A stretch of DNA of 64,000 nt, taken from NCBI GenBank assembly GCA_037447605.1, contig CM074822.1, positions 1,449,492-1,513,491 of the forward strand. Direction: 5' to 3'. The translations under genes and the position numbers were made by a program. The notes beneath the pieces are model-generated. The model ran no database searches, was not told the DNA's origin, and worked only from the letters and a program-made list of their open reading frames with translations. Positions 5,512 through 64,000 of the stretch are shown in pieces (position 1 is the stretch's first letter; each line of letters starts with the position of its first letter). The DNA comes from Zygnema circumcarinatum SAG 698-1b. Lineage: Eukaryota; Plantae; Zygnematophyceae.

Positions 5512-9753
<4,242 letters not shown>

Positions 9754-36198: not shown

Positions 36199-37059
36199 AT
36201 CGACAATACTTTGGACCCCTTGCCTTCCCCTTCCCTTCTCCTTCCCCTCAACCTGTTGCCCAACCCCCCCCTTACCTTCGGCCCTGGCCCTGCCCTTGGC
36301 CTCCCCCCATTGTCCACCCCTCCCCCTCTGGCTTGTTCTTTTCCCCTCCCACTTTTCCTCCCTCCTTACCCTTGCGCCTTTGCCCTCCCGCCCTTGTCCT
36401 CCCCTCCCCGCCCTCCCTGCCCCCTTTACCCCTTCCCCCATGCTCTCCCCCCCTTCCTTCCCCCCTTTCCCCCCTGCCATCCGCCCTCTGCCGTCCACCC
36501 CTTGCCGACACCCCTTTGTCCTCCCACTTGCTCATTGCCCTACCCCACTGCCCTTCCCCCCTGCCATTCCCCCCCTTGCCTTAGACCCCTTGCCCTCCCC
36601 CCCTTCCCTCCCCTTCTTCCCCCTTTCCCATCCCCCCATGCCCTCTTCTCCTTCCCCTTCCACCCCTCTCTCCCTCCCTCTCCTCCCTCTCTCCCTCCCT
36701 CCCTCCCTCCCTCCCTCCCTCCCTCCCTCCCTCCTCGCTCCCTCCCTCCCTCCCTCCCTCCCTCCCTCCCTCCCTCCTCGCTCCCTCCCTCCCTCCCTCC
36801 TCGCTCCCTCCCTCCCTCGCTCCCTCCCTCCCTCCCTCCCTCGCTCCCTCCCTCCCTCCCTCCTCGCTCCCTCCCTCCCTCCCTCCCTCCCTTGCCCCTC
36901 CCCTTCCCTCCCCTTCTTCCCCCTTTCCCATCCCCCCATGCCCTCTTCTCCTTCCCCTTCCACCCCTCTCTCCCTCCCTCCCTCGCTCCCTCCCTCCCTC
37001 CCTTGCCAGGGGGTGCACGTGTCCCTGGGCATTGGCCGGGGGGGGGGGCGTGCCTCCAA

Positions 37060-37965: not shown

Positions 37966-37972
37966 GATTAAT

Positions 37973-38346
37973 TAGGGCGTGTCAGACTTAACAAAATGTT
38001 ACGAATATCGAGTTTTTAGTATTACGAGAATCGAGGTTACTAAGTACTAAAAATCATCGCGCCCCCGAACCTAAACCGAACCGAACGGAAGTCAACTGTA
38101 TTAAGTCAACGGGTCAACGTTGCGAAGATTGACCCGTGGGGTTTACTGAAATTGNNNNNNNNNNGCGAAGTTGCGAAGACGGCGTTTGGAGAAGTGCGAA
38201 GACGGCGATCGCGGAGTGCGAACAGGACCGCGCCGCGAGTGCGAAAAACTAGGCTCGGGAATTTTAGTTTTACTGACGTTGACTCGAAATGTTACGAATA
38301 TCGAGTTTTTAGTATTACGAGAATTTTTTAAGTCTGACACGCCCTA
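37973..38346. mobile_element. hAT-like non-autonomous element, family B (TIR TAGGGCGTGTCAGACTTAA); internal gap
   Basis: 19-bp inverted termini tagggcgtgtcagacttaa / ttaagtctgacacgcccta; no clear TSD. Confidence 0.75.
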
Positions 38347-38355
38347 TTATCAATG

Positions 38356-40322: not shown

Positions 40323-41008
40323 TTATGTAAACCGCTCGCAGCCCCGAGCGGCCGCCAGCGGCCGTCGATCTCCCGCGATCGCGGAGCCGCAGTCCCATAC
40401 GCCCCCGCCTGCCGTACGCTCCGCAGCCCCGCGAGGCCCCGCCGCCGGGTCGGCGCAGCTCCGGAGGCCTGGGTGGTACGGATGTTTTATCACCCTTTTT
40501 TTTTTTTTTGGAGGGCGTTTTTTTTTTTTTTGGTGCGCTTTTTTTTTTTGAACTTTTTTTTTCTGGGTTTTTTTTTTTTTTACTTTGTTGGTTTTTTTTT
40601 TTCCTTTCTCTTTTTTTTTTTTTTTTAGACCACCGCGGTGACCCCGCTTCACAGAGACACAGTCCAGGCACCGCCGCCCGCCGCCTACTCGCGGCTAAGT
40701 TTGCAAAACCACGAGGACCACTCCCTCTGCAAGCGACATCGCCGTTGCGTTTCTCGTAACGCAATAGCGGACGGGGGGCGGCGGCCATGGAAACGTAAAA
40801 ATGCGATACGATACGATACGATATTTGCGCCTTTAACAATACGGACTGTCTCTCCGCCGCTAAGGGATGCGTCCTCGTGGTTTCTTTCTGCTCTTCTCCT
40901 GAACGCCCTCCCCCCTCGCCGTCCGCCATAGCCCGAGCAAGGGTCCTGCCTGCCTGCCTGCCTGCCTGCCTTCTGTATTTCTTCCCTTCGCCCGTCATTT
41001 CTCCGCAG

Positions 41009-41222
41009 TGATGGAAACGCGATCTACCCCCCATTCTGATTGTCCACCTTGGTTGGTAGAGTTGGATAGAAAAATTGATCATCCAAATTACCTTATATGC
41101 AAAGATGGATCCGTTTTATCGACGGAAGATTTAGTGAGCATTATTTGTGCAGAGCCAGAAACTACTGAGATTGGCTTGGTGGCTGCAATGGAAAATCGTC
41201 GCAGCATACCAATTAATGGAAG
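41009..41222 (+). other. Isolated exon-like segment of unknown product (METRSTPHSDCPPWLVELDRKIDHPNYLICKDGSVLSTEDLVSIICAEPETTEIGLVAAMENRRSIPING)
   Basis: Polypyrimidine + ccgcAG acceptor, open frame, AG|GTATGT donor. Confidence 0.4.
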
Positions 41223-41426
41223 GTATGTATACATATGTACATTTTTTTAGAAGGAAATAATTGAGAAAATTAATGTGTATTTTGTAAGGGTTCTTTTGTT
41301 TCAGGATGAGGGTTTAGGGTTTCGGGTCTCTCTCTCTCTCCCCCCTATCTGTTTGTCTTTCTGTCTGGGAACTCTCTTTCTCTCTCTCTTTGCCTCCCTG
41401 TCCCCCCCTCGTTCCCAAGTTGAAGT

Positions 41427-44232: not shown

Positions 44233-44873
44233 GGGCTCTAATCCTACAAACCTTTATAGGCACACAAGTTGTAAACTGGACAGAAAGATCTACCAAACAA
44301 GTGAAACAACGCCTGTTTCATTCATACCAGCCACTAACAACTACTCACACTTTTAACAATCAAATTTGTACACAAAGCCATTTCATATATACAAGGTTTC
44401 GAATTTTGTAAACGCATATCGTCGAGTTGTTGTGTGTCCGGTTCTCTCAATGTACTGGTCTCTACACATTTTACAATTTCGTACAAGTTTACAATTGTCT
44501 CTTGGTTTCAAATTCTGGCTTGTGTCTTGTGTGATACTGTGAGTTCCATTTTTTGCCTAAGGGTCGGGCCGCGCCTTCACATGCGCGAACTGAGCGCGCG
44601 GATTGCGTCTCACGTCGGCGCGGCTCAGCTGCACTCGAAACCACCAGGACCACTCCCTCTCCAAGGCGGTGACTTCCCGTGCGTGCTTTTCACGCGCGGA
44701 TGCACTCCCGCTGCGAGATCCTTGCTGGCGCATCGGTATCCGCCCATTTCATCGACGGTTCTTCGCGAGCTGCGAAATCAAGCATAACTATGGTTATCAA
44801 TACTGTACTTAGTTGACGTACAATAGACCCCCCCATTACTTTCGCCATGGTTTCGGCAAAGGGTAACTCTACT

Positions 44874-44993
44874 GCACCCCCGCGTTTTTTCTTTCGCACC
44901 CCCGCGTTTTTTCTTTCCCACCACCGCGTTTTTTCTTTCGCACCCCTGCGTTTTTTCTTTCGCACCCCCGCGTTTTTTCTTTCGCACCCCCCC
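44874..44993 (+). repeat. 22-bp minisatellite (gcacccccgcgttttttctttc), 5 copies plus partial
   Basis: Direct tandem copies. Confidence 0.95.
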
Positions 44994-45033
44994 CATTTGA
45001 AAATTTGTCTCCCGTTTTGAGGGCCGGGAGTAC

Positions 45034-45878
45034 AGGGCAGGGCAGAGGGCAGGGCAGGGCAGGGCAGGGCAGGGCAGGGCAGGGCAGGGCAGGGCAGGGC
45101 AGGGCAGGGCAGGGCAGGGCAGGGCAGGGCAGGGCAGGGCAGGGCAGGGCAGGGCAGGGCAGGGCAGGGCAGGGCAGGGCAGGGCAGGGCAGGGCAGGGC
45201 AGGGCAGGGCAGGGCAGGGCAGGGCAGGGCAGGGCAGGGCAGGGCAGGGCAGGGCAGGGCAGGGCAGGGCAGGGCAGGGCAGGGCAGGGCAGGGCAGGGC
45301 AGGGCAGGGCAGGGCAGGGCAGGGCAGGGCAGGGCAGGGCAGGGCAGGGCAGGGCAGGGCAGGGCAGGGCAGGGCAGGGCAGGGCAGGGCAGGGCAGGGC
45401 AGGGCAGGGCAGGGCAGGGCAGGGCAGGGCAGGGCAGGGCAGGGCAGGGCAGGGCAGGGCAGGGCAGGGCAGGGCAGGGCAGGGCAGGGCAGGGCAGGGC
45501 AGGGCAGGGCAGGGCAGGGCAGGGCAGGGCAGGGCAGGGCAGGGCAGGGCAGGGCAGGGCAGGGCAGGGCAGGGCAGGGCAGGGCAGGGCAGGGCAGGGC
45601 AGGGCAGGGCAGGGCAGGGCAGGGCAGGGCAGGGCAGGGCAGGGCAGGGCAGGGCAGGGCAGGGCAGGGCAGGGCAGGGCAGGGCAGGGCAGGGCAGGGC
45701 AGGGCAGGGCAGGGCAGGGCAGGGCAGGGCAGGGCAGGGCAGGGCAGGGCAGGGCAGGGCAGGGCAGGGCAGGGCAGGGCAGGGCAGGGCAGGGCAGGGC
45801 AGGGCAGGGCAGGGCAGGGCAGGGCAGGGCAGGGCAGGGCAGGGCAGGGCAGGGCAGGGCAGGGCAGGGCAGGGCAGG
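45034..45878 (+). repeat. (GGGCA)n pentanucleotide satellite, ~0.84 kb, followed by a GGA-rich purine tract to ~46930
   Basis: Essentially uninterrupted GGGCA run. Confidence 0.98.
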
Positions 45879-46985
45879 GAGGGGGAGGGGAGGGGAGGGG
45901 AGGAGGGGAGGGAGGAGGAGGGGAGGGGAGGAGGGAGGGAGGGGAGGGGAGGGAGGGGAGGGAGGGAGGAGGAGGGGAGGGGAGGGGAGGGAGGGAGGGG
46001 AGGGGAGGGGAGGGGAGGGGAGGAGGGAGGAGGGGAGGGGAGGTGAGGGAGGGGAGGGAGGGAGGGAGGGGAGGGGAGGGAGGGGAGGGAGGGGAGGGGA
46101 GGGAGGGGAGGGGAGGGAGGGGAGGGGAGGAGGGAGGGAGGGGAGGGGAGGGGAGGGGAGGGGAGGGAGGGAGGGGAGGGAGGGAGGGGAGGGGAGGGGA
46201 GGGAGGGAGGGAGGGAGGGAGGGGAGGGAGGGAGGGAGGGAGGGAGGGAGGGAGGGAGGGAGGGAGGGGAGGGGAGGAGGGAGGAGGGGAGGGGAGGGGA
46301 GGGGAGGGGAGGGAGGGGAGGGGAGGGAGGGAGGAGGGGAGGGGAGGGAGGGAGGGAGGAGGGAGGAGGGAGGGAGGGGGGGAGGGGAGGGAGGGGAGGG
46401 AGGGAGGGAGGGAGGGGAGGGAGGGGAGGGGAGGGGAGGGGAGGGGAGGGAGGGGAGGGAGGGAGGGGAGGTGAGGGAGGGGAGGGGAGGGAGGGGAGGG
46501 AGGGAGGGGAGGGGAGGAGGGGAGGGGAGGGAGGGGAGGGGAGGGAGGGAGGGGAGGGAGGGAGGGAGGGAGGGAGGGAGGGAGGGAGGGGAGGGGAGGG
46601 GAGGGAGGGAGGGAGGGGAGGGGAGGGGAGGGGAGGGAGGGGAGGGAGGGAGGGAGGGGAGGGGAGGGGAGGGGAGGGGAGGGGAGGAGGGGAGGGGAGG
46701 GAGGGAGGGAGGGAGGAGGAGGGGAGGGAGGGGAGGGAGGGAGGAGGGGAGGGGAGGGAGGGAGGGAGGGGAGGGGAGGGGAGGGAGGGGAGGGGAGGGG
46801 AGGGAGGGAGGGAGGGAGGGGAGGGGAGGGCCTGGGAGGACAGGGCAAGGGAGGGGAGCGGAGGGGAGGGGAGTGGAGGGGAGGGGAGGGGAGGAGAGGG
46901 CAGGGGAGGGGGGGAGCGGAGGGGACGGGAGGGGCGGGAAAAAGATTTTTTCCCGAAATGTTCAAAACTGGAGGGGTAACCAAAT

Positions 46986-49900
46986 TAGGGGGAGTCAGAC
47001 TTAGACCAGCGCCAAATCAATTCAGAAAACCCCCGACCCTAATTCCGCGTTGTACGGCAGCCCAATTCCGCGAAAAGTGGACGTTCGACAGGCTCGGGCG
47101 TCACGAATTCCAGAGAGCAATTATTTTGCCTCCGTATCTCCGGCCAGGTTTGACCTTTTTCGGCCCCGCGCCTCCTCCGCCGCTCCGCCGCCCGCCGCCT
47201 CCGTTTTGTCGCTACGCAAGTCAATTACCGCGCGAGCGGCGTCCTGCCGCGGCGCTCGCGCCTGCCGCCTGTCTGGCTCGCTCGGCTCGCTGCGAGCCTA
47301 TCAGCTCGGGTTTGTTGTTTAGGCTCCTCGCCATGGCTGAGCTTATCCTTGCAGCGGAACGAGCAGAGCGTCCTCTCGCCTCACCCCAGTGAACGGTGAG
47401 CGGTGTGCCGTCGACCACGGCAAGAGCGCGATCGGTTTATGGGACGTGATTTATGACTGGAGCAGCGGTGAGTCCTGCCCTTTGCCCCTGCCTCCCTTAG
47501 GCCTTGCCCCCTGCCTCCCTCCGTGCCCTGCACCTGCCTCCCCTTGCCCTTGCCTCTGCACCTGCCTTCCCGCTCCTTCCCCGCCTCCCTTCCCTTGCCC
47601 CTGCCTCCTGTGTGCTCTTGCACTGCCCCCTGCCTCCCTGCCTTTGCTCATGCATCCTTTTGTCTCCTTGGTGTTTTTGCTACTGCTGCTGCTGCTTTTT
47701 ATGCTGCTGTTGTTGATGTTGCTGCTGCTTTTTATGCTGTCGCTTTTTTTCTTTTTGCTTTTTTGCTGCTGCTGCTGCCTCTTCTTCCTCTTCATCTGCT
47801 GTTTTTGCTGTTGTTGTTGTGCTGCTGCCGCTGCTACTGTTGTTGCTGCTGTTTCTGCTGCTACTGCTCCTGCTGCTGCCGCTTCTCATCCTGCTGCTAC
47901 TGTTGGTTGCTGCTGCTGCTGCCTCTTCTGCTCTTGCTTTTGCTGCTCTTGTTGCTTCTTCCTTTTTCTGCTGCCGCTGTTTTTGTTTTGTTGCTGTTGC
48001 TGTTTCTGTTGCTACTGCTGCAGCCTCTAGTCGCTTCTTATCCCAGGCTGCTACCGCTACAGCCCTGCTGCTACTGTTGCTGCTGTTATACCGCTGTTGT
48101 TGCTGCTGCCGCTTGATGTTGCTGCTGTTTCTGCTGCTACCGCTGCAGCTCTATCGCTTCTTATCCCGCTTTTTCGCTAATACTGCTACAGCCCTGCTGC
48201 TACTGTTGCTACTAAGCAGAGCAGGATGAAAGAGCAGCATTGCTGCTGTTGCTGCTGCTGCCGCTGTTGCTGCTGTTCTGCTGCTACTGCTGCAGCCTCT
48301 AGTCGCTTCTATCCCGCTGCTACTGCTACAGCCCTGCTGCTACTCGTTGCTACTGCTGTCGCTTCGTTGTTGCTATTGCTGTTGTTACTGCTGTTGCCGT
48401 TGCCGCCGCTGTTGCCACTGCTGCCGCTGCTGCCGCCGCTGGTGCTGTGTTGTTGCTATTGTTGTTCTGTTGCTGCCCTGTTGCTGTCTCTGTTGCTGTT
48501 CCTGGGTTGCTGCTTCTTTTCTTGTTGCTATTGCTATTTGTTGTTACTTCCTTGCCGCTGCTGCTGCTATTGCTTTTCTACTACTGCTGCTGTTGCTGCT
48601 GTTTATGCTGCCAAGTATTGTTGATGTCAGCTGCCATGCTTTTTGGAGTTGCTTTTTTCTCGCTTGCTTTATGTTGTTACCAAAGCAATTTTTATTATTT
48701 TTTGGATGCTGCATTTGGTATTCTGCATTCTGCATTCCTCATTTCAAGCATTCCGCATTCCGCATTTTGCCTCCCTTGCCCATGCCCTAGCCTCCTTTGC
48801 TTTTGCCCCTTGCTGTGTTGCCCTTGCCTCTGTCTTCCCTTCCTTTTGCTTGTGCCTCCCGTTCCTTCGCTTATGCCATTGCTACGTATATGAGTGTGTG
48901 TTATTCCTCCCCCTCCCCATTAAGTCAAAGTGGCGGATTGGTTACGCAACTGTTGCAAAACAGTAATAAAGGGGTTCAAATCCCCTCTTTGACTTGTAGT
49001 GTTTATTCATTCTTCTATTTTTATTTATTTAAAGTTTTTGTGTTTTTGCCTCATATACCAAACATATGTTGTTATTTTTTCTAGTTGTTTTTATTCTATC
49101 TATCCATTCTTTATTCTATATATTATTCTATCTGCTTCTGCTGCTGCTATTGCTGTTGCAGCATGCTTTTTTTTTTGCTGCTACATTTTGTATCTGTGAT
49201 TCCCTATTCGCATTCCGCATTCCTGGGACTAAGATTCCGTGATTCCGCGATTCCAAGATTCCGCATTCCGGCGATTCCGCGATTCTGCCTCCCCTTTGCC
49301 TCAGCCCACCGCCCAGTTCCTGGCTCTATGCTTGTGTTGTGTATGAGTGTATGTTATTCCTCCCCTTCCAATTAAGTCGAAGTGGTGGATTGGTTACGCA
49401 ACTATTGCAAAACAGTAATAAAAGGGTTCAAATTCCCTCTTTGACTTGTAGTGTTTATTCTATTTTTATTTATAGTTTTGTGTTTTTGTTTCATATGTCA
49501 AATATTTGTTGTTATTTTTGTTGTCTTTTGCTTTTACCTTTATTTGTTTCAATTGATGAGATTGTATAAATGTTTCTGACCTTCCCAGCATACACAACTA
49601 CTACTCTTTCTTTGTTATTATAAATACTCATTAACGCTAAATAATTCATACACATATATACATACACACAAACATATATAAAAATAATTTTGTATACAAA
49701 ATAAAACCATGTCTCATTATAAAAACTTGTGCCATTCATTCTCAATTTAGTAAGTACTGGCGCCATCTAAGACACCCCTGGCCTCCTTCTCTCTCTTTGT
49801 GCACACACACTTTTTGAGTTCTCCTGTACTCTACTTTAAGCGATTCTAAATGCAAATAATATCATGTTTTAACATTAATAGATTTTTTACGCTGCTCCAA

Positions 49901-52231
49901 TAATGTGTAATCTTTGTTCTTCTTGAGAATCTTATATTTGTAAGTTTTGTTCTTCTTCTTCATCTTGGATTCGCCTTGCCTCAGTAAACTCTCATTGTTG
50001 TTTCTCCCACTCCAGTCTTTGACGTTGCATCTTCACTTGAGATTCCACGCATATTGCTTATTATTTTTAGGTTTATTTGTATATCTCATGGGAGAAGCTT
50101 TATTCAATGTTCTAAATTGCGCTACAACAACAACCCAATTCAAAGTTTTGAGGGAGATGGTGAAAAGCAATAAAAACAACTAAAAAAAATATCAACAAAT
50201 GTTTGGCATATAAAGCAAAAACACAAAAACTTTAAATAAATCAAAATTAGAAGAATATAAAAACACTGCAAGTTGAAGTGGGGATTTGAACCCCTTTATT
50301 ACTGTTGCAATGTTTTGCAACGGTTGCGTAACCAATTCGCCACTTTGACTTGGGGAGAGGGAGGAATGACATAGAATCATACACACAACAGTAGCATAAG
50401 CAAAGGAATGAGGGGCAATGCTGTGCGCAAGGAAGACAAAGGCAAGGGCAACACAACAAGGCAAAGGCAAAGGAGGCTGCAGGTGCAAGTGAGGCAAAAT
50501 GCGTATTGCAAAAATGCAGCATCAAAAACAAAAATGAATGCTGCAACAGCAAAGCGAGAGCAACAGCCCAGCAGATAGATAAAATATAGAATAAAGAATA
50601 GATAGATAGAATAAAATAAATCTAAAAAAAATAACAACAAATATTTGCATATGAAGCAAAAACACAAAGTTTAAATAAATAAAAGAAAAGTGAATAAACA
50701 CTAAGGTTGAAGAGGGGATTTGAAACTCTGGTTACTGTTTTGCAACAAATATGCGAACTAATTCGCCACTTCAATCCTTAATAGAGAGAGGGAGTGAATG
50801 ACATACAATCATATACACACAACAGAAGCATAAGCAAAGGAACGAGGGGCACAAGGCAAGGAAGACAGAGGCAAGGGCAACACAACAAGGGGCAAAGGCA
50901 AGGGAGGCTGGAGCAGGTGCAAGGGAGGTAGAATGCGGAATGCGGAATGCCGAATGCGGAATGGGGAATGCGGAATGCGGAATGCCGAATGCGGAATGGG
51001 GAATGCGGAATTCAGAATGCGAAATGCAGCAGCCAAAAAAAAAAATGAATGCTGTAGCAGTAGCAGCAAGAGCAGCAACCGCAACAGCAGCAGCAGCAGG
51101 AGGAGGAGCAGGAGTAGGAGTAGGAGCAGCAGCACAGCAACAGCAGCAGCAGCAGAAAAAGAAGCAGAAGCAATAGGAGCAACAACAGTAGAAAAAGCAG
51201 CAGCAAAAAAAACAGAAGCAATAAGAGCAACAGCAGAAGCAATAAGAGCAACAGCAGAAGCAGAAGCAGCAGCACAGCAACAGCAGCAGCAGCAGAAAAA
51301 GAAGCAGAAGCAATAGGAGCAACAACAGTAGAAAAAGCAGCAGCAAAAAAAACAGAAGCAATAAGAGCAACAGCAGAAGCAATAAGAGCAACAGCAGAAG
51401 CAGAAGCAGCAGCAGCAGCACCAACAGCAACAACAACAGCAATAGTAGCAGCAGCACCACCACCAACAGCAACAACAACAGCAGTAGTAGCAGCAGCAGC
51501 AGAAAAAGAAGAAGAAGCAGCAGCAGTAGCAACAGCAGAAGCAGCAGCAGTAACAACAGCAGAAGCAGAAGCAGCAGCAGCAGCCAGTACCAGCAGCAAG
51601 AGCAGCAGCAGCACAGCAATAGCAACAGCAGCAGAAAAAGAAGCAGCAAAAAAAAAACCAGCAGCAGCAGCAGCAGAAAGAGCAGCAAGGGAGACAAGGA
51701 AGGCATGGGCCAGGGCGAGGGAGGCAGGGGCAGGTGCAAGGGCAAGGACTCACCGCTGCTCAACTCCGCCGTCGTCACTTCGCGTCCTCGCTGACCACTC
51801 TCCCGTGGTGCTTATGAGGTCCGTGAGGACGTGCTTGCCGCAAGGTGGGTGTTGTTGGTGGGGGAAAGAGAAACCCTAAAGCTGTGCCAGCCCTGAAACG
51901 CTGCTCTGCGCGGCGGCGGGTCGCGGCGTCCGGGCGGCGGCGGTGAGGCGCTCGCACGTGCGTGACGCGCATGGCGACAAGGCGGGGCACGATTCCTGAT
52001 CGGCGGAAAGCTGGAATTTCGAAACGGGGGGCCTCTGGAGGCCCCCCGTTTCGGAGCGCGGAATTCTGAAATTTGGGGGCATTTTTGTAACCTATTCCGC
52101 CGTACGGACGTGACAGACAGGTTCGGGGGGAGCCGTGGTTTCCGACCCGAATTCGGAAATCGAAATCAATACCTTTCCGCGGTCGAAATCTTGCAATTCC
52201 GCGGGCGATGGTCAAGGTCTGACTCCCCCTA
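46986..52231. mobile_element. 5.2 kb non-autonomous foldback element with family-B hAT-like TIRs (TAGGGGGAGTCAGAC) and long internal inverted arms (about 47458-49560 / 50180-51762)
   Basis: 15-bp inverted termini; arms are diverged reverse complements containing CTG/CAG tracts, GCATTCC heptamers and two ~0.4 kb subunits; no transposase ORF. Confidence 0.75.
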
Positions 52232-52407
52232 ATTTTGGTATGGTACGACCGCACGACCGTATGAGTACGGTCGTAAGACCGTTAATTGTTCAAAGCGAGT
52301 GGGTATAATATATGTAATAAAGTGTTTTACTTTGTCATATATTACTAATTTTAAACCCGTTGTAAATTATATAATATATTCGGAATTTATAACGCGGGCC
52401 ATCCCTA
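52232..52407 (+). mobile_element. Family A MITE right half, fused to the end of the 5.2 kb element
   Basis: Homologous to ~23405-23572; ends CCATCCCTA. Confidence 0.8.
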
Positions 52408-52410
52408 CAC

Positions 52411-52571
52411 TAGGGGGTGTCAGACTTAACAAAATCTTACGAAAAGCGTTACGAAAAAAAAGGTTACGAAAGTACTCCGCCGCAGGAGGATCGCTATTAT
52501 ACTGGAGTACTCGTTCTGATGTCAAACTTACGAACACGCGTACTGAAATTTTTTAAGTCTGACACCCCCTA
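52411..52571. mobile_element. 161-bp family B MITE (TIR TAGGGGGTGTCAGACTTAA)
   Basis: 19-bp perfect inverted termini; internal similarity to 37973-38346. Confidence 0.8.
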
Positions 52572-52685
52572 CTAGACGCGCGCGCTTCGTACATTCAAAT
52601 CACCATCCGTACATCCGACGAAAAAAGGTCTGTATCTATTCTGAAAAGTATGAAACAGATTTTTTCGCAAAAAAAATCGGAGAAT

Positions 52686-53712
52686 GATACAGCGGCCCCA
52701 CTTTTTGGATATCGGCGCCCCCCTTTTGGGAAAAAAAGTACTTTTTTTTTGGCTAATCAGCCCCCCCCCCCTTGGAACTTTCGGGAGGAGAGATCTTGTA
52801 GACAATCGGACCCCGCGCCTCGCGCGCAGGATCCGACCGTGCACCGACGTACGGCGCCGCGCATCGCGGCGTGGCCCGCGAGATGCGGCGAGCCTACGGA
52901 AAAGTTGTCCTCACTTGACCCGTTTGGGTCAGAGGTTGCCACGTGGCAGTCTGCCATTGGAAAGCCCTGATACCGGTCCCCCATACCGATACAGTGGACC
53001 CCCATAATATTTTCCACCTTGTACAGTGCGTCCCCAAGAAATTCGCCCCGATTTTGCCGAAACCACCTTTTTGTACGGTAACTCAATGTTAACGTATTAG
53101 GGGTGTTGACATAACCTGACCTATTCTCCAATACAAAATCTGTTAATCGAAACGGGTTTCAAACATGGGTCACGCTTTTACGCTGTACGGTATGTACGAA
53201 TAAAATCTCTAGGTAGTACGGTATACGTACGGCACCAATAGGAGCTCGTGTATCTAAATCACTGTACGATACGATACGATACGTACGAACAGACATGAAC
53301 TCTAACATAATACCGCTCGCCTATTGGTAACACGGACCTTATATTTGCAAATTACAATATTTTCGCCCAGTATTTGCCGAGACCATGGCGAAAATATTAT
53401 GGGGGTCCACTGTATCGGCATGGGGGACCGGTATCAGGGCTGTCCAATGGCAGACTGCCACGTGTTCTCTACCCCAAAAGGATCAGGTGAGGACAACGTT
53501 TCTGTAGGATCGCCGCATCTCGCGGGCCACGCCGCGATGCGCGGCGCCGTACGTCGGTGCACGGTCGGATCCTGCGCGCGAGGCGCGGGGTCCGATTGTC
53601 TACAAGATCTCTCCTCCCGAAAGATCCAAGGGGGGGGTGATTAGCCAAAAAAAAAAGTACAGTTTTTCCCAAAAGGGGGCGCCGATTTCCAAAAAGTGGG
53701 GCCGCTGTATCA
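52686..53712. repeat. ~1 kb hairpin: ~330 bp high-identity inverted arms (52686-53010 / 53385-53712)
   Basis: e.g. gcgcctcgcgcgcaggatccgaccgtgcaccgacgtacggcgccgcgcatcgcggcgtggcccgcgagatgcggcga is exactly reverse-complemented in the right arm. Confidence 0.92.
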
Positions 53713-53886
53713 TCCTTTGTAGAAGCTGCCCGAAGAAAAAGTACACTACATTCAGAACAAGGACACTGTAAATAGTCGTCTCCAAANNNNNNNNNNNNNN
53801 NNNNNNNNNNNNNNNNNNNNNNNNNNNNNNNNNNNNNNNNNNNNNNNNNNNNNNNNNNNNNNNNNNNNNNNNNNNNNNNNNNNNNN

Positions 53887-56800
53887 CTCCACTCCACCTC
53901 CAAGCCCTCCCCCTCCCACTCCACCTCCAAGCCCCCCGCCTCCGACTCCACCTCCAACCCACCCCACCCCCACCCGACTCCACCTCCAAGCCCTCCCCCG
54001 CCGACCCCACCACCAAGCCCTCCCCCTCCCACTCCACCTCCAAGCCCCACTCCACCTCCAAGCCCTCCCCCTCCGACTCCACCTCCAAGTCCTCCCCCTC
54101 CCACTCCACCTCCAAGCCCTCCCCCTCCCACTCCACCTCCAAGCCCACCCCCTCCGACTCCACCTCCAAGCCCTCCCCCTCCCACTCCACCTCCAAGCCC
54201 TCCCCCGCCGACCCCACCACCAAGTCCTCCCCCTCCCACTCCACCTCCAAGCCCTCCCCCTCCCACTCCACCTCCAAGCCCCCCGCCCCCTCCGACTCCA
54301 CCTCCAAGCCCTCCCCCTCCCACTCCACCACCAAACCCCCCGCCTCCAACTCCACCTCCAAGCCCACCCCCACCGACTCCACCTCCAAGCCCTCCCCCGC
54401 CGAACCCACCACCAAGTCTTCCCCCTCCCACTCCGCCTCCAAGCCCTCCCCCTCCCACTCCTCCTCCAAGCCCTCCCCCTCCCATTCCACCACCAGGCCC
54501 ACCCCCACCGACTCCACCTCCAAGCCCACCCCCACCGACTCCACCTCCAAGCCCTCCCCCTCCGACTCCACCTCCAAGCCCTCCCCCTCCCACTCCACCT
54601 CCAAGCCCTCCCCCTCCCACTCCACCTCCAAGCCCTCCCCCTCCGACTCCCCTCCCCCCCCCGACTCCACCTCCAAGCCCTCCCCCTCCCACTCCACCTC
54701 CAAGCCCTCCCCCGCCGACCCCACCACCAAGTCCTCCCCCTCCCACTCCGCCTCCAAGCCCACCGCCTCCGACTCCACCTCCAAGCCCTCCCCCTCCAAC
54801 TCCATCTCCAAGCCCACCCCCACCGACTCGACCTCCAAGCCCTCCTCCGCCGACCCCACCACCAAGTCTTCCCCCTCCGACTCCACCACCAAGCTCTCCC
54901 CCTCCGGCTCCACCACCAAGCCCTCCCTCTCAGACTCCACCTCCAAGCCCCCCCCCTCGGACTCCACCACCAAGCTCTCCCCCTCCGGCTCCACCTCCAA
55001 GCCCTCCACCTTCGAGTCCACCTCCGTGGTCTCCCCCTCCGATTCCACCTCCAAGGCCTCCCCCTCCTTCTCCGCCACCAAAGGCACCCCCGCCGACTCC
55101 ACCCCCAAGCCCTCCCGCTCCGCCTCCACCAGGCAGCTCCGTGCAAACTATCAACAGTGGAGACAGTGAGGCTCCTCGTCCCGCCCCGCCCGCCCTTTGC
55201 AGCGCTGCTCAGAGCCGGGCAGAGTCGGGCGACTCGCTCGTCGAGCCATGTGCTTGCAGATTGTCGTAAAATATGAAAAGCAACCATCTGTTCTCTTCAA
55301 TGAAGGCTTCCATGGAAGGGGAAAAGCTGAAATTTCTTTTTTTTCCCATTGTTAGATTCGAAGCTGAGCTCGATCCCAATCCTGCATCTGCCCGCGTTTT
55401 TTGGCGCAGGGGATGCTCTTCTCGCTGTCAAGGCGGCATTCAATGACGTGTCACAACTCAAACTCACCTCCTGGAGTGCGAATAACGGCGATTGCAGCAC
55501 CTGGGAAAGGATCAGATGTGATGGATCGCCATTCGGCCGCGTTCAGAACCTGTGAGCTACGTTTTGACTGATCACCGCTTTTTATTTTGGAGGGCAAGGG
55601 CACCACGGAGTCCATAGCTGCTGAACTGCAGCACGAGGCTGATGGTTCTGCGGGAAGAAGCCTTCTCAGAAAGCGGCCTAAAATGGGCCGCCGGAGCAGA
55701 GGAGCTCAGTAGAATAAGCTTCCTTCTCCTACCCGATCCCTTATTTTCTGACGCTTTCACTGGTAACCTGCTATGTGCAGAGATCTAGAAGGCTACGGAC
55801 TTGGAGGGTTCATTTCACCTGCCATCGGTAACTTGACAATGTTGGGAGGCTTGTGAGTGGCTCCATTCCATACGGATGCGTTAGATGCTTGTTTTCGAGT
55901 TCACAGTAATGGGGAGGGCTCAGATCTGGGTGATGTGCTACGGGATTTAACTCAATTTCTACAGGCAACATTGTGAATTTGTAGACCTTGTCAGTTTTTT
56001 CCCCTTGAAATCTACAATGCAAGTGATATAGTTCCTAGATAGAGAAATGAAAGTTCAAGTTGTTCTCTTACTTGAAATGGAAGTGCAAAAAAAATCAATG
56101 CAGCTTTCAAATAAGTGAGCCTGTCAATGCATGCTCGCGGTCCTAGCTCGGCTGCATATGCACACCGTTAAAGTTCAGGATGTCACATCCCGCGGACGGA
56201 CACACTGCAGTTGCTCGACTCTGTTCCTCGGCATTCATTTGAGCATCCTTTTCAAATGAGTTCCGCTTCTTGCTGCAAGCATCGGCCAATCTCGTGAAGC
56301 CTGGTTTTTTTCGCAGATATTTGTCTAGAAATTCCCTTTCCGGCTCCATCCCGGATTCTATTGGAAACCTGACGAATCTCTCAATCTTGTAAGGTTCTTC
56401 TTTCCTTAGTTGAAGAAGTGTAAAAAATGAATTCACCTTTCAGAAAAGTTGTGCTGCAAATGCATGCTCGCGTCCTAGCTCGGCTGCACATGCACACGCT
56501 TTATAGTTCAGGAAGTCACGTACCGTGGAAAGACGTACTGCAGTCGCTCGACTTTGTCCCTCGGCATTCACTTGAGCATTCTTTGCATATGAGTTCCGTA
56601 ACTTGCTGCAAACATCGGCCAAACTCGTGAAGATTTTTTTTTTTTTGCAGAAAATTGGATCGTAATTCCCTATCGGGCTCTCTCCCGTATTCTATCGGCA
56701 ACCTTGCGAATCTGGCACTCTTGTAAGTCTCTGAAAGTGTTGAAAACGAACGTAATTCTTACAGAAGTGGGCCTGCGAATGTTCGCGTCCTAGCTTGGCT

Positions 56801-59800
56801 GCACATGCAATCCCTTACAGTTCAGACTGTCACGTCACGTGTGAGCGGACGGACGTGTTTGCTCGACTTTGTTCCTTGAGCATTCTCCCCACATGAGTTT
56901 CGCTTTTGCTGCAAACATCGGCCACACTCGTGAAGCCTTGTTTTTTTATTTTTGCAGATGGTTGTTTTCTAATTCCCTATCGGGCTCTATCCCGGATTCT
57001 ATCGGCCGCCTGACGAATCTGCAAGACTTGTAAGGTTTTTCTTTCCATAGTTGAAAAATTAATTGTACCAAAATAATTCACCTTTCAGAGAAGTGAGGCT
57101 GCAAATGCATGCTCGTGTCCTAGCTCGGCTGCACATGCACAGCCTCAAAAGTTTAGGATATCACGTCCCGTGTACGCGAACGCACGTGTTGACGAAGTTG
57201 TTCGATTGTGTAGTTCGGCATGCCCTTGAGCATTCTCCGCACATGAGTTCACCGTTTGTTGCAAACGTCGGCCACACTCTTGAAGCCTCGTTTTTTATTT
57301 TGCAGGCTCTTGTATTCTAATTCCCTATCGGGCACTATCCCGGATTCTATTGGCAACCTTACGAAACTGCCACGCTTGTACGTATTTTTTTCTCTTATTT
57401 GAAAAAAGAAAGTGTAGAAAAGCAATGAAGGTTTTCGAGGAGAAGGGCCAGTGTATGCTCGCGTCATAGCTCGGCTGCACATGCACACGCTTGAGGTTCA
57501 GGATGTCACATCACGTGTACGCGGTCGCAGACTTGTGAGAGTTGCTCGATTGTGCGCTTCAGCATACTCCCCACATGATTTTCGCTTTTTGTTCAGACAT
57601 CGGCCAAACTCGTGAAGCCTCGACTTTTTTGCAGATACTTGGATTCCAATTCCCTGTCGGGCTCTATCCCGGACTCTATCGGGAACCTTAAGAATCTGGG
57701 ACAGTTGTGAGTTTTTTATTTGAAAAATTAAAGTGTGAAAAGGAAATGCAATTTTTATAGAAGTGGGGCTGCAAATGCATGCTTGTGTCCTAGCTCGGCT
57801 GCACATGCACACGCTGCATAGTTCAGGACGTCACATCACGCGTACGTGGACAGACGTGTTAGATTTGCTCGATGATGTTCTTCGGCAGGCACTTCAGCAA
57901 ACTCCCCACATGAGTTTCGTTTTATGTTCAAACATTGGCCACACTCGTGAAGCCTCGTCGTCGTTTTTGCAGATACTTGCGAGCGAATTCCCTGTCGGGC
58001 TCTATCCCGGACTCTATCGGCAACCTTACGAATCTGGGGCAGTTGTAAGTATCTTTTTCTCATAAATTGGAAAACGCTGTGGATAAAATCAACCCTTATT
58101 TTAAAGAAGTGGGCTAAAAGCAAAAAATGCTGTTTATGAATATTTTGCCAATGCATGCTCGGCTGCACATGCAAACGCTTGAAGTTCAAGAAGTCACATC
58201 ATGTGAACGCGGATGGACATGTTCGAGGTGTTCGATTGTGTTCTTCGGCATGCACTGGTGCATTCTCCCCCACATCTGTCTCGTTTTGTGTTGCATACAT
58301 CGGCCAACCTCTTGAAACCTCGATTTTTTTCGCAGAATGTTGAATTCAAATAACCTGTCGGGCACTATCCCGGGTTCTATCGGCAACCTTATGAATCTGG
58401 GTTACCTGTAAGTAATTTCTCCACTTAGTTGAATAAGAGAGTGTAAAAGACCAATGCAACTTTTTGAGTAGTTGGGTTGCAAATGCACCGCGTCCTAGAT
58501 CGGCCGCACATGCACTCGCCCGAAGTTGAGGATGTCATGTCCCGTGTACGCGGACGGACAGATTGCAGTTGTTCGGCATTCACTTGAGGATCCTTTCCTC
58601 ATGATTTCCGCTACTTGCTGCAAACATCGGCCAATCTCGTGAAACCTGGTCTTGTTTGCAGAGACTTGTCGTACAATTCCCTATCGGGCTCTATCCCGGA
58701 TTCTATCGGCAACCTTAGCAATCTGATCCACTTGTAAGTACTTTTATTCCAATGCATCTTTTAGAGAAGTGGAGCTGCAAATGCATGCTCGCATCCTAGC
58801 TCGGCTGTTTATGCACACGCTTAAAATTCAAGAAATTTTGTGAAAAATGCGTCTTAGAACTCGTATAGACAAAACATTATCTTTTTGATGCATCTGCACA
58901 ACAATTGTTTGGAGATCCACGATCCAAATAGTTATTTTTTGTCTCCTTATTTAAAAAAAGTACAGAAGGTGGACCTGCATGTCTTGTTTGTTGCGTGAAC
59001 TCTTTTCCGTGATCGGGACCACCCTTTATCCTTTTCTTTAAACTTATTTCCTTGTGTCTACAGGACTTTGCAAAGTAACAAATTGGAGGGGAGAGTGCCC
59101 GGCTCCTTCAGTAAACTTACCATTATGACGAAATTGTGAGATCCGCTGCATTGATAAAGTTGTAGTTGTGGTTTCATTTTTTTGTTTAGTTGCTTGTACC
59201 TCTCAATCTGTCACATTTAATTTTGCAATTGCAGTAGAATTGAGTTAAGATGTTTTTTTGTCACTTGGTGTTATTTAAGCACAATGATACGCAATTCTGC
59301 AATCAAAAGATTGGACTCAATTTTTCAGGTTTAATCTGTAGAGACTACGGGGTCGGGTTTACGATTGTGGTTCTTTTAGTTTGAAGGGTTTAGGGGCTAA
59401 TGCCGATAAGGGTTCAGAAAATCTGGGCGTTTAGGTAGTTCAGAGTCTACAGGATTGAAGGTTAAGTGTTCAATGGGCTTAGAGATGTAGGCGTTTTGGG
59501 GTTTGAGATTCGAAAACTGAAGGTGGGAGGGTTGAATATGGAGAATACGGAAAATGTGCACAATAGGATGGTCGTAATGGATGTCACCACACGGAAGAAG
59601 TTGGGAGGCTCCTCTCTCTCTAACGCGCCACCCTTAATGCCATCAGGTATTTAACCTCCAACAAGTTGACAGGCTCCATTTACCTTGGGAGGAGTACTAC
59701 TGACCTCAATTTCGAATACAACTACTTCTCTGGGCCATTCTACGCGGAGGGGGTTCCCATTTGCCCTAGCCATTATGCATCAAACTGCATTTTTCGAAGT

Positions 59801-62800
59801 GACACATTCTGCCCAGGCCTATATCAGAAATCGCTGCAAGAGTGTGCGTCCTTTTGCCACAGCGATGTTTCCGATGGAGCGTGCGGGGGGCATGGCACAT
59901 GCGGGTACGACTCACAAACGTGCACGTGTGACGCCGGATATACGCTAACATCTGGCACATGTATGCTGCCCGGTCCACCTCCAAGCCCTCCCCGTCCGCC
60001 TCCACCTCCACCTCCGAGACCTCCCCCTCCGACTCCACCTCCAAGCCCTCCCCCTCCAACTCCACCTCCAAGCCCACCGCCTCCGACTCCACCTCCAAAC
60101 CCACCCCCACCGACCCCACCACCAAGTCCACCCCCTCCCACTCCACCTCCAAGCTCTCCCCCTCCGATTCCACCTCCAAGCCCACCCCCACCGACTCCAC
60201 CTCCAAGCCCTCCCCCTCCCACTCCACCTCCAAGCCCTCCCCCTCCAACCCCCCACCGCCTCCCCCTGGTCTCCCCCTCCTCCACCTCCAAGCCCTCCCC
60301 CTCCGACTCCACCTCCAAGCCCTCCCCCTCCGACTCCACCACCAAGTCCTCCCCCTCCCACTCCACCTCCAAGCCCTCCCCCTCCCACTCCACCTCCAAG
60401 CCCACCGCCTCCTACTCCACCTCCAAGCCCTCCCCCTCCGACTCCACCTCCAAGCCCTCCCCCTCCAACTCCACCTCCAAGCCCACCCCCTCCTACACCG
60501 CCTCCATCTTCGCCTCCTCCCACACCGCCTCCATCTTCACCTCCTCCCACACCATCTCCATCTTCACCTCCTCCCACACCCCCTCCAACTTCGCCTCCAC
60601 CCACACCACCTCCATTTCGGCCTCCTCCCACACCACCTCCACCTTCGCCTCCTCCCACACCGCCTCAATCTTCGCCTCCTCCCACATCTTCGCCTCCTCC
60701 CACACCGCCTCCATCTCACCGCCTCCTCCCACACCACCTCCATCTCGGCCTCCTCCCACCCCGCCTCCATCTTCGCCTCCTCCCACACCGCCTCCATCTC
60801 GGCCTCTTCCCACACGCCTCCATCTTCTTCTCCTCCCACCGCCTCCATCTTCGCCTCCTCCCACACCGCCTCCATCTTCGCCTCCTCCCACACCGCCTCC
60901 ATCTTCGCCTCCTCCCACACCGCCTCCATCTTCGCCTCCTCCCACACCACCTCCATCTCGGCCTCCTCCCACATGCCTCCATCTTCCTCCTCCCACACCG
61001 CCTCCATCTCCTCCCACACCGCCTCCCTCCTCCCACACCGCCTCCATCTTCGCCTCCTCCCACACCACCTCCATCTCGGCCTCCTCCCACACAGCCTCCA
61101 TCTTCGCCTCCTCCCACACCGCCTCCATCTTCGCCTCCTCCCACACCACCTCCATCTCGGCCTCCTCCCACACCACCTCCATCTTCGCCTCCTCCCACAC
61201 CGCCTCCATCTCGGCCTCCTCCCACACCGCCTCCATCTTCGCCTCCTCCCACACTTCCTCCTTCGTCGTCTCCTCCCACATCGCCTCCATCTTCGCCTCG
61301 TCCAACACTGCCTCCATCTTCGCCTCCTACCACACCACCTCCATCTCGGCCTCCTCCCACACCGCCTCCATCTTCGCCTCCTCCCACACCGCCTCCATCT
61401 CGGCCTCTTCCCACACTGCCTCCATCTTCGTCTCCTCCCACATCGCCTCCATCTTCGCCTCCTCCAACACCGCCTCCATCTTCGCCTCCTCCCACACCAC
61501 CTCCATCTCGGCCTCCTCCCTCACTGCCTCCATCTTCTTCTCCTCCCACATCGCCTTCATCTTCGCCCCCTCCCACACCGCCTCCATCTCGGCCTCATCC
61601 CATACCGCCTCCATCTTCGCCTCCTCCCACACCTTCTCCATCTCAGCCTCCTCCCACACCGCCTCCATCTCGGCCTCCTCCCACACCGCCTCCATCTTCG
61701 CCTCCTCCCACACCGCCTCCATCTTCGCCTCCTCCCACACCACCTCCATCTTCGCCTCCTCCCACACCGCCTCCATCTCGGCCTCCTCCCACACCACCTC
61801 CATCTTCGCCTCCTCCCACACCGCCTCCATCTCGGCCTCCTCCCACACCGCCTTCATCTTCGCCTCCTCCCGCACTTCCTCCATCATCTTCGCCTCCCTC
61901 CCTCCACCGCCTCCATCTTCGCCTCCTCCCACACCGCCTCCATCTCGGCCTCCTCCCACACCGCCTCCATCTTCGCCTCCTCCCACACCGCCTCCATCTT
62001 CGCCTCCTCCCGCCCCATCTCGGCCTCCTCCCACCGCCTCCATCTTCGCCTCCTCCCACACCGCCTCCATCTTCGCCTCCTCCCACACCGCCTCCATCTT
62101 CGCCTCCTCCCACACCGCCTCCATCTTCGCCTCCTCCCACACCGCCTCCATCTCGCCTCCTCCCACACCGCCTCCATCTTCGCCTCCTCCCACACCGCCT
62201 CCATCTTCGTCACCTCCCTCACCGCCTCAATCTCGGCCACCTCCCACACCTCCTCCATCACGGCCTCTTCCCACACCGCCCACATCTTTGCCTCCTCCCA
62301 CACCGCCTCCATCTCAGCCACCTCCCACACCGCCTCCATCTTCGCCTCCTCCCACACCGCCTCCATCTCGGCCTCCTCCCACACCGCCTCCATCTTCGCC
62401 TCCTCCCACACCGCCTCCATCTTCGCCTCCTCCCACACCGCCTCCATCTTCGCCTCCTCCCACACCGCCTCCATCTTCGCCTCCTCCCACACCGCCTCCA
62501 TCTTCGCCTCCTCCCACACCACCTCCATCTCGGCCTCCTCCCACACCGCCTCCATCTTCGCCTCCTCCCACACCGCCTCCATCTCGGCCTCCTCCCACAC
62601 TGCCTCCATCTTCTTCTCCTCCCACATCGCCTCCATCTTCGCCTCCTCCCACACCGCCTCCATCTTCGCCTCCTCCCACACCGCCTCCATCTCGGCCTCC
62701 TCCCACACCGCCTCCATCTTCGCCTCCTCCCACACCGCCCATCTCGGCCTCCTCCCACACCACCTCCATCTCGGCCTCCTCCCACACTGCCTCCATCTTC

Positions 62801-63951
62801 TCCTCCTCCCACATCGCCTCCATCTTCACCGCCTCCATCTCGGCCTCCTCCCACACCGCCTCCATCTTCGCCTCCTCCCACACCGCCTCCATCTTCGCCT
62901 CCTCCCACACCGCCTCCATCTCGGCCTCCTCCCACACCGCCTCCATCTTCGCCTCCTCCCACACCACCTCCATCTCGGCCTCCTCCCACACCGCCTCCAT
63001 CTTCGCCTCCTCCCACACCGCCTCCATCTTCGCCTCCTCCCACACTGCCTCCATCTCGCCCTCCTCTCACTCCTTCTCCAAGCCCTCCCCCTCCCACTCC
63101 ACCTCCAAGCCCTCCCCCTCCCACTCCACCTCCAAGCCCTCCCCCTCCCACTCCACCTCCAAGCCCTCCTCTTTCGACTCCATCTCCAAGCCCTCCGGCT
63201 GCATTTCCAACTTTCCCCCCGCGGTCTCCCCCAGCAAGCCCTCCACTTCCACCTCCTCGTTCATCCCCATCAAGTCCCCCTCCGTTTCCTCCACAATCGC
63301 CCCATCCCCGTCCTCCTCCCCGCCCGCCCCGTCCTCCTCCGCCTCCTCGTTCTCCTCCCCGTCCTCCTCCCTTCCCGCCCCGTCCTCCTCCGCCTCCCCG
63401 TTCTCCTCCCCGTCCTCCTCCCCGCCCGCCCCGTCCTCCTCCGCCTCCCCGTTCTCCTCCCCGTCCTCCTCCCCGCCCGCCCCGTCCTCCTCCGCCTCCC
63501 CGTTCTCCTCCCCGCCCTCCTCCCTCTCCGCCTCCACCACCGCCCGCTCCCCCTTCTCCTCCGTCTCCGCCTCCACCTCCTCCTAGTACGTACCAGGATT
63601 TGCAGGATAGTGGAGATAGTGGATCTGTTGCTTGAGATGCTCTAGTCAGTCAACAGAGTGTCTAATTTTTTCGTATGTTATGTGATTGGCACGATCTTGC
63701 AGCTGCGGAGCTGGCATCATTTTGGAGAATCGACGCACTCAATATGAGGGCAGTGAGCCTACTTTTATCTCAAAGAACGACAGCAGATATTTGTGCGACG
63801 TCGTGTTTGGCGAATCCCAAATGTATCGCGTTTGTTTTTACGAGAGTGTCAAATATGACGATCGTTGGAAATTGCACATTCATAGGACTTCCTGTGAAAT
63901 TTTACGTTTCAAGCTCTCAACTGACAAGTATTTTTGTCCGGGATGTATTTG
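53887..63951 (+). CDS. Chimeric extensin-like LRR protein: Pro-rich - LRRNT - 11 plant-type LRRs - Cys-rich/EGF-like - long Pro-rich rod - PAN/apple. Exons 53887-55165, 55410-55551, 55781-55852, 56317-56388, 56651-56722, 56958-57029, 57306-57377, 57635-57706, 57973-58044, 58336-58407, 58662-58733, 59064-59135, 59647-63585, 63703-63951. Start lies in or before the gap; the gene continues past the window.
   Basis: GD|RDALLAVKAAFNDVSQLKLTSWSANNGDCSTWERIRCDG (LRRNT). Ten 72-nt phase-2 exons of type LxLxxNxLSGSIPDSIGNLxNL. NYFSGP...NC...C...QKSLQECASFC...CGGHGTC...CTCDAGYTLTSGTC (LRR cap + EGF). All junctions GT-AG with consistent phase. The Pro-rich exons contain apparent frameshifts. Confidence 0.88.
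56090..58810 (+). repeat. Tandem array of eight ~307-363 bp units, each an LRR exon plus homologous intron
   Basis: Intron motifs gcaaatgcatgctcgcgtcctagctcggctgcacatgcac and gcaaacatcggcca.actcgtgaagcct recur before each exon. Confidence 0.93.
63703..63951 (+). CDS. PAN/apple-like domain exon (part of the LRR-extensin chimera)
   Basis: TAELASFWRIDALNMRAVSLLLSQRTTADICATSCLANPKCIAFVFTRVSNMTIVGNCTFIG...; C-x3-C-x5-C-xAF...C pattern; ttgcAG acceptor, 249 nt, phase 1-1. Confidence 0.75.
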
Positions 63952-64000
63952 GTGTGTATCACTCTATCTATATCAGTATTTTCATTTCCACTTTTCATTG

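Follow-up and report, generated by a model that had tools for sequence, protein, structure and literature searches.

What kind of protein is encoded by a gene in which long proline-rich repeats stand on both sides of a domain made of leucine-rich repeats (LRRs)? The question is raised by positions 53887-63951 on the + strand of a 64,000-nucleotide stretch of contig CM074822.1 of the streptophyte alga Zygnema circumcarinatum SAG 698-1b (hereafter the window, by which we mean the whole stretch that was analysed). In land plants, LRR-extensins (LRX) are central to the sensing of cell-wall integrity. LRX proteins have been described as wall-anchored binding proteins (PMC4769139; PMC7618880); one of these studies reported no LRX in a survey of four algal genomes, but it did report long chimeric extensins in green algae and defined them as a class (PMC4769139). 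An original prediction for the Zygnema locus described a continuous, phase-consistent gene for a chimeric wall protein, running from a proline-rich rod through LRRs and an EGF-like module to a second rod and a PAN/Apple-like domain. Repeat, Pfam and exon analyses placed all of these segments where they had been called. The claimed continuity failed, in that the frame set by the LRR-EGF head (frame 1) stops at the TAG at 63584 and the PAN exon is in phase with frame 2 only. The stretch is expressed, and we favour, with moderate confidence, the reading that it is the internal 10 kb of one large gene for a modular extracellular hydroxyproline-rich glycoprotein (HRGP), in which rod, LRRs, EGF-like module and second rod are spliced to a PAN exon and the frame shifts within the second rod are mostly assembly errors.

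The 5' part of this reading is carried by RNA data from four runs of the same organism (three studies), all of which behave as RNA and were mapped to positions 55000-60100. The exon of the first rod (rod 1; 53887-55165, + strand), truncated by an assembly gap, reads in frame 0 as (PPPSPPPPT)n over at least 405 residues, followed by the linker GSSVQTINSGD. Its tandem array (53887-55130) consists of 46 copies of a 27-bp unit with 81% matches, proline frame 0, and its 405 residues contain no Tyr. The 3' end of the rod is expressed, with 117-nt RNA contigs ending at 55166, and the intron that follows on the + strand (55166-55409, GTGAGG..CAG, phase 1) is revealed by loose ends of the contigs. Those starting at 55410 carry eight additional letters, TGGAGACA (runs X1 and X3), and those that match up to 55174 go on with TTCTCGCTGTCAA (runs X3 and X7). 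Since TGGAGACA lies at 55158-55165 and TTCTCGCTGTCAA at 55419-55431, each with a single occurrence on the + strand of the window, the loose ends place uniquely and the transcript joins 55165|GTGAGG to CAG|55410. Over 55171-55341, RNA depth was 0 for run X1 and 6-16 for the remaining runs, against 34-959 in the flanking bins. The joint is in phase solely with frame 0 of rod 1, its proline frame, and yields ...PPPPGSSVQTINSGD-R-DALLAVKAAF.... Rod 1 is spliced in phase to the exon of the N-terminal LRR cap (LRRNT), and what the RNA contigs show in front of this exon is a rod exon instead of one for a signal peptide. Two other arrangements of this region were rejected. The donor 55249|GTGCTT is phase-compatible, but RNA places the donor at 55165|GTGAGG; translation beginning anew at ATG 55274, given a signal peptide by an assumed one-base error in a T-run, conflicts with the depth of 0-16 over 55171-55341 and with the contigs that join 55165 to 55410.

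The LRR domain was recovered in spliced form as well. The LRRNT exon (55410-55551, + strand; DALLAVKAAFNDV...C..W..I.C; phase 1 in, phase 2 out) passes the Pfam cut-off for LRRNT_2 (E 9.5e-7), and its joint 55551>55781 was seen in four runs. It is followed on the + strand by ten exons of 72 nt each, at 55781-55852, 56317-56388, 56651-56722, 56958-57029, 57306-57377, 57635-57706, 57973-58044, 58336-58407, 58662-58733 and 59064-59135, every one of which encodes a single plant-type LRR (e.g. YLSRNSLSGSIPDSIGNLTNLSIL), has AG/GT flanks and is in phase 2; an 11th LRR in the large last exon brings the total to 11. All 11 predicted introns between 55551 and 59647 were found as GT..AG RNA joints at the exact coordinates in the four runs from three studies (among them 55551>55781, 55852>56317, 58733>59064 and 59135>59647), and RNA depth falls inside the LRR introns. 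The exons and introns together make up a tandem array whose period is about 348 bp (3.4 copies with 74% matches at 56874-58036; wider extent 56090-58810). Because intron sequence repeats together with exon sequence, the LRR solenoid grew by duplication of an exon-plus-intron unit, and every copy of this unit is spliced in RNA.

Copies of this region other than the one in the window are also represented in the RNA data. Over the first LRR intron (55516-55939), the sole covering contig was unspliced in all four runs, with 13-18 differences and about 96% identity, and in X1 it is a contig of 1,119 nt that beyond 55939 continues with sequence of another kind, unrelated to the window. The region of LRRNT and the first LRR has a second copy or allele that has diverged. 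In many further RNA contigs, the match to a single LRR exon is followed by 14-40 other letters or by long loose ends (56713-56970, 58038-58370, 59102, 59121-59647). Such contigs stem from expressed LRR paralogues whose exon cores are nearly identical, so that RNA depth over the LRR exons is not specific to this gene.

The large exon that follows (59647-63585) holds the last LRR, a Cys-rich cap, the EGF-like module and the second rod (rod 2). Its first part (59647-59971, + strand, frame 1) contains LRR 11 and, at 59648-59971, the cap (NYFSG..C..NC..C..Q..C..FC) and the EGF-like module (C..CGGHGTC..CTCDAGY..C). The six-Cys EGF pattern (C-x-C-x2-G-Y/F) is kept across 11 sequences, namely this gene and 10 homologues, and the invariant pattern of cap plus EGF in the alignment reads N-Y-F..C..NC..C..Q..C..FC..G.C.G.G.C..C.C..G..C. 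A profile of the head alignment, compared with the PDB, matched LRR kinases (through the LRR part) as well as the EGF modules of E-selectin (E 0.0018) and factor IX, with EGF matches in the range E 0.002-0.01; the same profile matched the C-terminal Cys-rich tail of LRX2 (6qxp, residues 278-349, E 0.0055). A PDB sequence search with the head alone returned nothing beyond weak EGF matches. The AF2 model of the head (pLDDT 82.6) superposes locally on a reelin EGF (33 columns, 1.9 Å), and Foldseek with this model gave no whole-model match, only local EGF and weak LRX8 matches. What takes the place of the hinge is a true EGF-like module. Between 59647 and 60049 the RNA contigs pass without a break out of the head and into rod 2, so the head and the start of rod 2 form one exon in the mRNA. 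The proline rods that had been proposed to flank the LRR-EGF head thus do so in one transcript, the 5' side being joined by RNA splicing and the 3' side by a single exon in contigs that reach 60049; rather than separating these segments into different genes, RNA joins rod 1, the LRR exons, the EGF exon and the start of rod 2.

Relatives of the head point to algal receptor kinases. When the 110-residue head was compared exhaustively by phmmer with 1.84 billion representative proteins, only 12 matches resulted, which include three proteins of Mesotaenium endlicherianum, one Leptophrys vorax transcriptome protein, several transcript and metagenome fragments, an amphioxus LRR protein and a long protein (P0012); no land-plant LRX was among the 12. 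A word-based search for long relatives of the head (722-2296 residues) found none. Once spliced, the ectodomain from LRRNT to EGF comprises 408 residues; it aligns with Mesotaenium P0005 over 381 residues (36% identity, E 2e-53) and with the secreted P0007 over 406 residues (33% identity, E 2e-51), and the head is also homologous to P0003 and P0002. Both P0003 and P0005 are laid out as LRR-EGF, Pro-rich stalk, hydrophobic or membrane segment and Pkinase domain (E 5e-37 and 6e-42), whereas P0007 and P0011 end after the EGF and P0002 and P0013 after a short Pro-rich tail, without a kinase. The closest relatives of the head are the LRR-EGF ectodomains of Mesotaenium receptor kinases and not land-plant LRX. 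Because of this homology to algal kinase ectodomains, a receptor-like binding role may fairly be proposed from sequence, and to that extent the sensor or adhesion role of the original prediction stands; its further suggestion of a molecule spanning the wall is speculation. The head also occurs in miniature: the Logan transcript contigs SRR8128904_26098 and SRR8128905_16045 (L001 and L002) contain a complete open reading frame (ORF) of 302 residues whose product, a small LRR-EGF protein, ends in a short Pro-rich tail and is a mini LRX-like form of the same head.

The main difficulty of the locus lies in rod 2 (59972-63585, + strand), a 3.6-kb C-rich array of about 1,200 codons with 27-bp repeats and periods of 27, 54 and 81 bp. 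It is open in all three frames, a trivial consequence of its C-rich composition. Its proline frame is filled by SPPPP and TPPPS units of the Ser-Pro(3-5) extensin type, contains no Tyr in any block and is broken in the assembly, where it shifts about ten times (frame 1, briefly 0, 2, 1, briefly 0, 1, 2, 1, 2, 1, 2), with indel sites at about 60250, 60711, 61004, 61881, 62015, 62148 and 62714. The head sets frame 1, in which the ORF runs stop-free to the TAG at 63584-63586 and encodes PPPTPPPSS blocks in alternation with blocks of STSKPSPS and SSHTASIFA. Where the rod ends, the proline frame is frame 2, the only one with which the PAN exon is in phase. Since a head in frame 1 and a PAN exon in frame 2 are incompatible, either the assembly is wrong in at least one of the shifts or this is a broken allele. 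An intron within rod 2, or at the border of head and rod, that would repair the frame was considered and rejected: the sole good donor in 59990-63590 is at 63586, and RNA is unbroken over 59647-60049.

Several features of the shifts suggest errors in the assembly. The shift sites are irregular units short by 1-2 nt at scattered positions; among the irregular units of rod 2, 10 of 15 have lengths that are not multiples of 3, mostly through deletions of 1-2 nt, compared with one of four in rod 1. Scattered deletions of this size are expected from an unpolished long-read consensus, and the array is highly homogeneous and therefore hard to polish. In all three places where a neighbouring domain anchors the frame, the anchored frame is the local proline frame, and rod 1, whose frame is anchored by an RNA splice, holds its proline frame over 1.2 kb. 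Taken together, the shifts in rod 2 are more likely than not an assembly artefact.

Beyond the rod, the PAN/Apple-like exon (63703-63927, + strand, 225 nt, phase 1-1) has a four-Cys core, C-x3-C-x5-C...C, and convincing splice sites, with a T-rich tract and CAG acceptor on one side and a GTATTT donor on the other. In a language-model search with this exon, the ten best family-bearing matches all belonged to the PAN family or clan (scores up to 0.94, the matches listed having fewer than 170 shared features), and no relatives were found among proteins of 61-194 residues. Its transcription was gauged from the share of sampled words of 63587-64000 that occur in sequencing runs. This share was 0.80-0.92 in the five best DNA-labelled runs (X11-X15), 0.56-0.67, mostly exactly 0.56, in runs from the studies P2 and P3 (both of which showed spliced RNA in other runs) and 0.41 in the RNA run X1, the value expected for the PAN exon alone being 0.51. 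As the RNA value of about 0.56 is near that of the exon alone and below that of DNA, the PAN exon is transcribed, unlike most of the sequence on either side of it. Run sets that express the LRR part also contain the PAN exon, and the one set that lacks the former lacks the latter. A phase 1-1 exon requires an upstream phase-1 donor, and the sole good one in or after rod 2 is the GTACGT at 63586. The putative intron (63586-63702, + strand, GTACGT..TTGCAG, 117 nt of non-repeat sequence), whose donor is in phase 1 in frame 2 only, is placed by these phases together with the word share, and it is quite likely that the PAN exon is joined to rod 2. The PAN exon is additionally open in frame 1, which continues the frame of the head, over all 74 codons of 63704-63925; as a coding frame this alternative was rejected, its only match being a weak one to DUF1438 (E 0.007). 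A further intron begins at 63928 (63928-64000, + strand; GTATTT, a phase-1 donor), and with no in-frame stop before it the gene continues past the window.

A number of observations weigh against this account. As assembled, the head and the PAN exon are out of frame with each other and the frame-1 ORF ends at the TAG at 63584. The joint 63585>63703 was deduced rather than read in RNA, the contigs having been mapped to 55000-60100; of the claim that a PAN domain follows the rod, what stands is that the exon is present, transcribed and PAN-like. Domain profiles gave a mixed picture, since LRRNT_2 passes its Pfam cut-off but the EGF-like module (EGF_2, E 0.0028, 18.4 bits, cut-off 22.1) and the PAN exon (PAN_4, E 1.3e-4, 22.4 bits, cut-off 27; PAN_1, E 1e-3, 19.3 bits, cut-off 21.4; PAN_2, E 1.4e-3, 19.2 bits, cut-off 21.1) fall below theirs. 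The single-sequence AF2 model of the PAN exon was poor (pLDDT 51.6) and was not used for a fold search. Where RNA contigs and assembly could be compared in unique sequence, there were three indels, all of them intronic. Finally, the shifts in rod 2 look non-random: long blocks occur in frames 1 and 2 alone, visits to frame 0 last 48 nt at most, and the seven long-range shifts alternate between -2 and -1 (about p 0.02). This pattern looks like constraint relative to the frame of the head and argues for real indels.

If the indels are real, rod 2 would be read in the frame of the head throughout, with the 27-nt repeat in two registers and a product that is a mosaic of PPPTPPPSS and Ser/Thr/Ala/His-rich SSHTASIFA or STSKPSPS blocks. 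The long blocks do occupy just the two registers that give a Pro-rich or a Ser/Thr-rich frame-1 peptide, and the register that is avoided (LPHRLHLRL, 48 nt at most) is a bad one in frame 1 alone, the very frame of the head. Of the three short stays in that register, two (at 60794 and 60953) consist of adjacent unit pairs of -1 and -2, net -3, and the alternation of the seven long-range shifts fits as well. The shift sites moreover all differ in sequence and thus arose independently, not by the copying of a single event. Under this reading, however, the PAN exon is out of frame and the product is broken or ends at 63584. The composition of the proline frame is equal in both types of block; a codon-position test on the 65 regular units of rod 2 gave no signal, and was underpowered, with 8 and 28 informative mismatches; and the proline frame that rod 1 keeps for 1.2 kb is fixed by RNA. 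We regard real shifts as unlikely, and slightly more so the specific version in which they are tolerated, with a two-register repeat encoding alternating extensin-like and Ser/Thr-rich glycomodules and selection removing just the Leu/His/Arg register. Were that version true, indels of one nucleotide in either direction would be nearly neutral in rod coding sequence and would yield new block patterns of the glycoprotein.

The same stop codon invites a division of the locus into two transcription units, of which the first (rod 1, LRRs, EGF and rod 2) would end at the TAG at 63584 as an LRX-like protein with an extra N-terminal rod, and the PAN exon would be a separate gene or a non-coding spliced 3' exon. 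The stop-free frame-1 ORF set by the head suits such a division, as does the indirect placing of the rod 2-PAN joint; there is an ATG at 63675 in the PAN frame just before the acceptor, and the word share of 0.56 fits a first exon starting at about 63670 about equally well as an internal exon. Yet the strong acceptor and symmetric phase 1-1 of the PAN exon need an upstream phase-1 exon, for which 63585|GTACGT is the sole donor within 117 nt, and a start at M63675 would give no signal peptide to a module of a kind that is disulfide-bonded and extracellular. A promoter within 90 nt of the preceding stop is unlikely, and each run set contains either both the LRR part and the PAN exon or neither of them. 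Two units thus seem improbable, to much the same degree as real shifts. A third possibility, compatible with the spliced rod-LRR-EGF-rod-PAN gene that we favour, is a giant receptor kinase in which a transmembrane segment and a kinase lie beyond the PAN exon and the rods are an expanded version of the Pro-rich stalk of the Mesotaenium proteins. The closest named relatives of the head, P0003 and P0005, have the order LRR-EGF, short Pro-rich part, hydrophobic segment and Pkinase, and the gene goes on past 63927 with a phase-1 donor; other relatives (P0007, P0011, P0002 and P0013) are without a kinase, and we consider the extension rather doubtful.

In the favoured reading, the rod exon would end at 63585|GTACGT and be spliced to the 225-nt phase 1-1 PAN exon of a gene that extends past the window, and most of the roughly ten shifts in rod 2 would be uncorrected errors of 1-2 nt in a homogeneous array, the true rod keeping the proline frame throughout. 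The rods may serve as glycosylated polyproline-II spacers. A polyproline-II helix rises by about 0.3 nm per residue, which would make rod 1 at least 0.12 µm and rod 2 about 0.35 µm long. Such spacers would separate the receptor-type LRR-EGF binding head from the PAN module, a possible second binding site, within the wall or the mucilage. Tyr being absent from the rods, extensin-type cross-linking through it is unavailable to them, and the protein might act as a non-covalent tether, a cross-linker or a ligand trap. We infer a chimeric extensin that acts like an LRX, glycosylated polyproline-II rods keeping its binding head in place within the wall.

Comparison with land-plant LRX and PEX proteins (e.g. 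Arabidopsis LRX1; the structures of LRX2 and LRX8, 6qxp and 6tme) brings out both the likeness and its limits. Shared are an extracellular plan of about 11 LRRs (10-11 plant-type repeats in LRX, 11 here), a Cys-rich hinge and a C-terminal Ser-Pro(3-5) domain. The Zygnema gene differs in that it adds a second proline rod N-terminal to the LRRs, its hinge is extended into an EGF-like module, its rods are without Tyr and thus lack the YXY motifs for cross-linking, its second rod is much longer and probably has a PAN exon behind it, and the kin of its head, judged from sequence, are algal receptor kinases, the searches having shown no kinship with the land-plant LRX clade. Because of these differences we do not file the gene as an LRX. 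Nor is it a classical extensin, defined by a signal peptide and SP(3-5)/YXY repeats alone, given its LRR, EGF and PAN modules and the lack of Tyr. No paper or database protein with an LRR-EGF-extensin-PAN architecture was found, which agrees with the unfamiliarity originally noted; the core of LRR, Cys-rich hinge and extensin is, by contrast, the known LRX plan, so that the design is a variant and not wholly new.

Other systems share single parts of this design. The two uncharacterised Mesotaenium kinases (ME000153S01472, which is P0005, and ME000014S01168, which is P0003) have the whole ectodomain, from LRRNT or the LRRs to the EGF, followed by a Pro-rich stretch, including the cap (NYFSG..C..NC..C..QR..C..FC) and the EGF (CGGHGxC..CxCxxGY). 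Their stalk of about 10-60 Pro-rich residues leads to a membrane segment and kinase, whereas the Zygnema gene has a stalk of about 1,200 residues, a further rod before the head, and no membrane or kinase part within the window, which ends 73 nt after the PAN exon. The small secreted LRR-EGF proteins P0007 (Leptophrys vorax data set), P0002 and P0013 (Logan contigs) bear the same head but have 250-450 residues and neither long rods nor PAN. In design, the protein resembles the rod-and-head HRGPs of green algae, which are extracellular and modular and carry globular binding modules on long Ser/Pro hydroxyproline-rich shafts; examples are the sexual agglutinins of Chlamydomonas, Algal-CAM of Volvox and the pherophorins. 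Their heads are different (fasciclin, pherophorin and agglutinin modules), and we know of no green-algal HRGP with an LRR-EGF head between two rods. The S-domain (G-type lectin) receptor kinases and wall-associated kinases (WAKs) of land plants have PAN and EGF-like modules in extracellular receptor domains, but they possess no LRR and no extensin rods, and their lectin or GUB_WAK and kinase domains were not seen here.

The gene shows an alga near the land-plant lineage mounting a receptor-kinase-type LRR-EGF head on extensin-type rods, on both sides. This supports the idea that wall- and membrane-anchored sensors were built by shuffling one head onto different stalks via phase-compatible exons, and it provides a concrete protein for tests of ligand binding and wall localisation.

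Both ends of the gene lie outside readable sequence. The whole window is eukaryotic and has many N gaps, one of which, 100 N at 53787-53886, stands directly before the gene stretch, so that the start at 53887 merely reflects where the gap ends and the 5' part of the gene (a signal peptide and possibly another head) is lost upstream. A search of 36500-53800 for an upstream head or signal-peptide exon gave just simple repeats and repeat-like ORFs, and a window-wide motif search found the LRR motif nowhere else in the window. Beside the gap lie an inverted pair of similar ORF-like segments containing ENIMGVHCIGMGDRYQG (52757-53131 on the - strand, 53324-53644 on the + strand) and an adjoining segment, GDDYLQCPCSECSVLFLRAAST (53700-53786), that recurs 16 kb upstream at 37460-37530; the segments of 52757-53786 are debris of a dispersed repeat or transposon. 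Long simple-sequence arrays occupy 1-5262, 5717-6396, 36664-37003 and 45033-46910 and comprise (CCCTCC)n over 5.2 kb, (CT)n over 0.7 kb, (CCCT)n and (CAGGG)n over 1.9 kb. Such C- and G-rich arrays are open in several frames and could pass for proline rods, and they are distinct from the 27-bp coding repeat.

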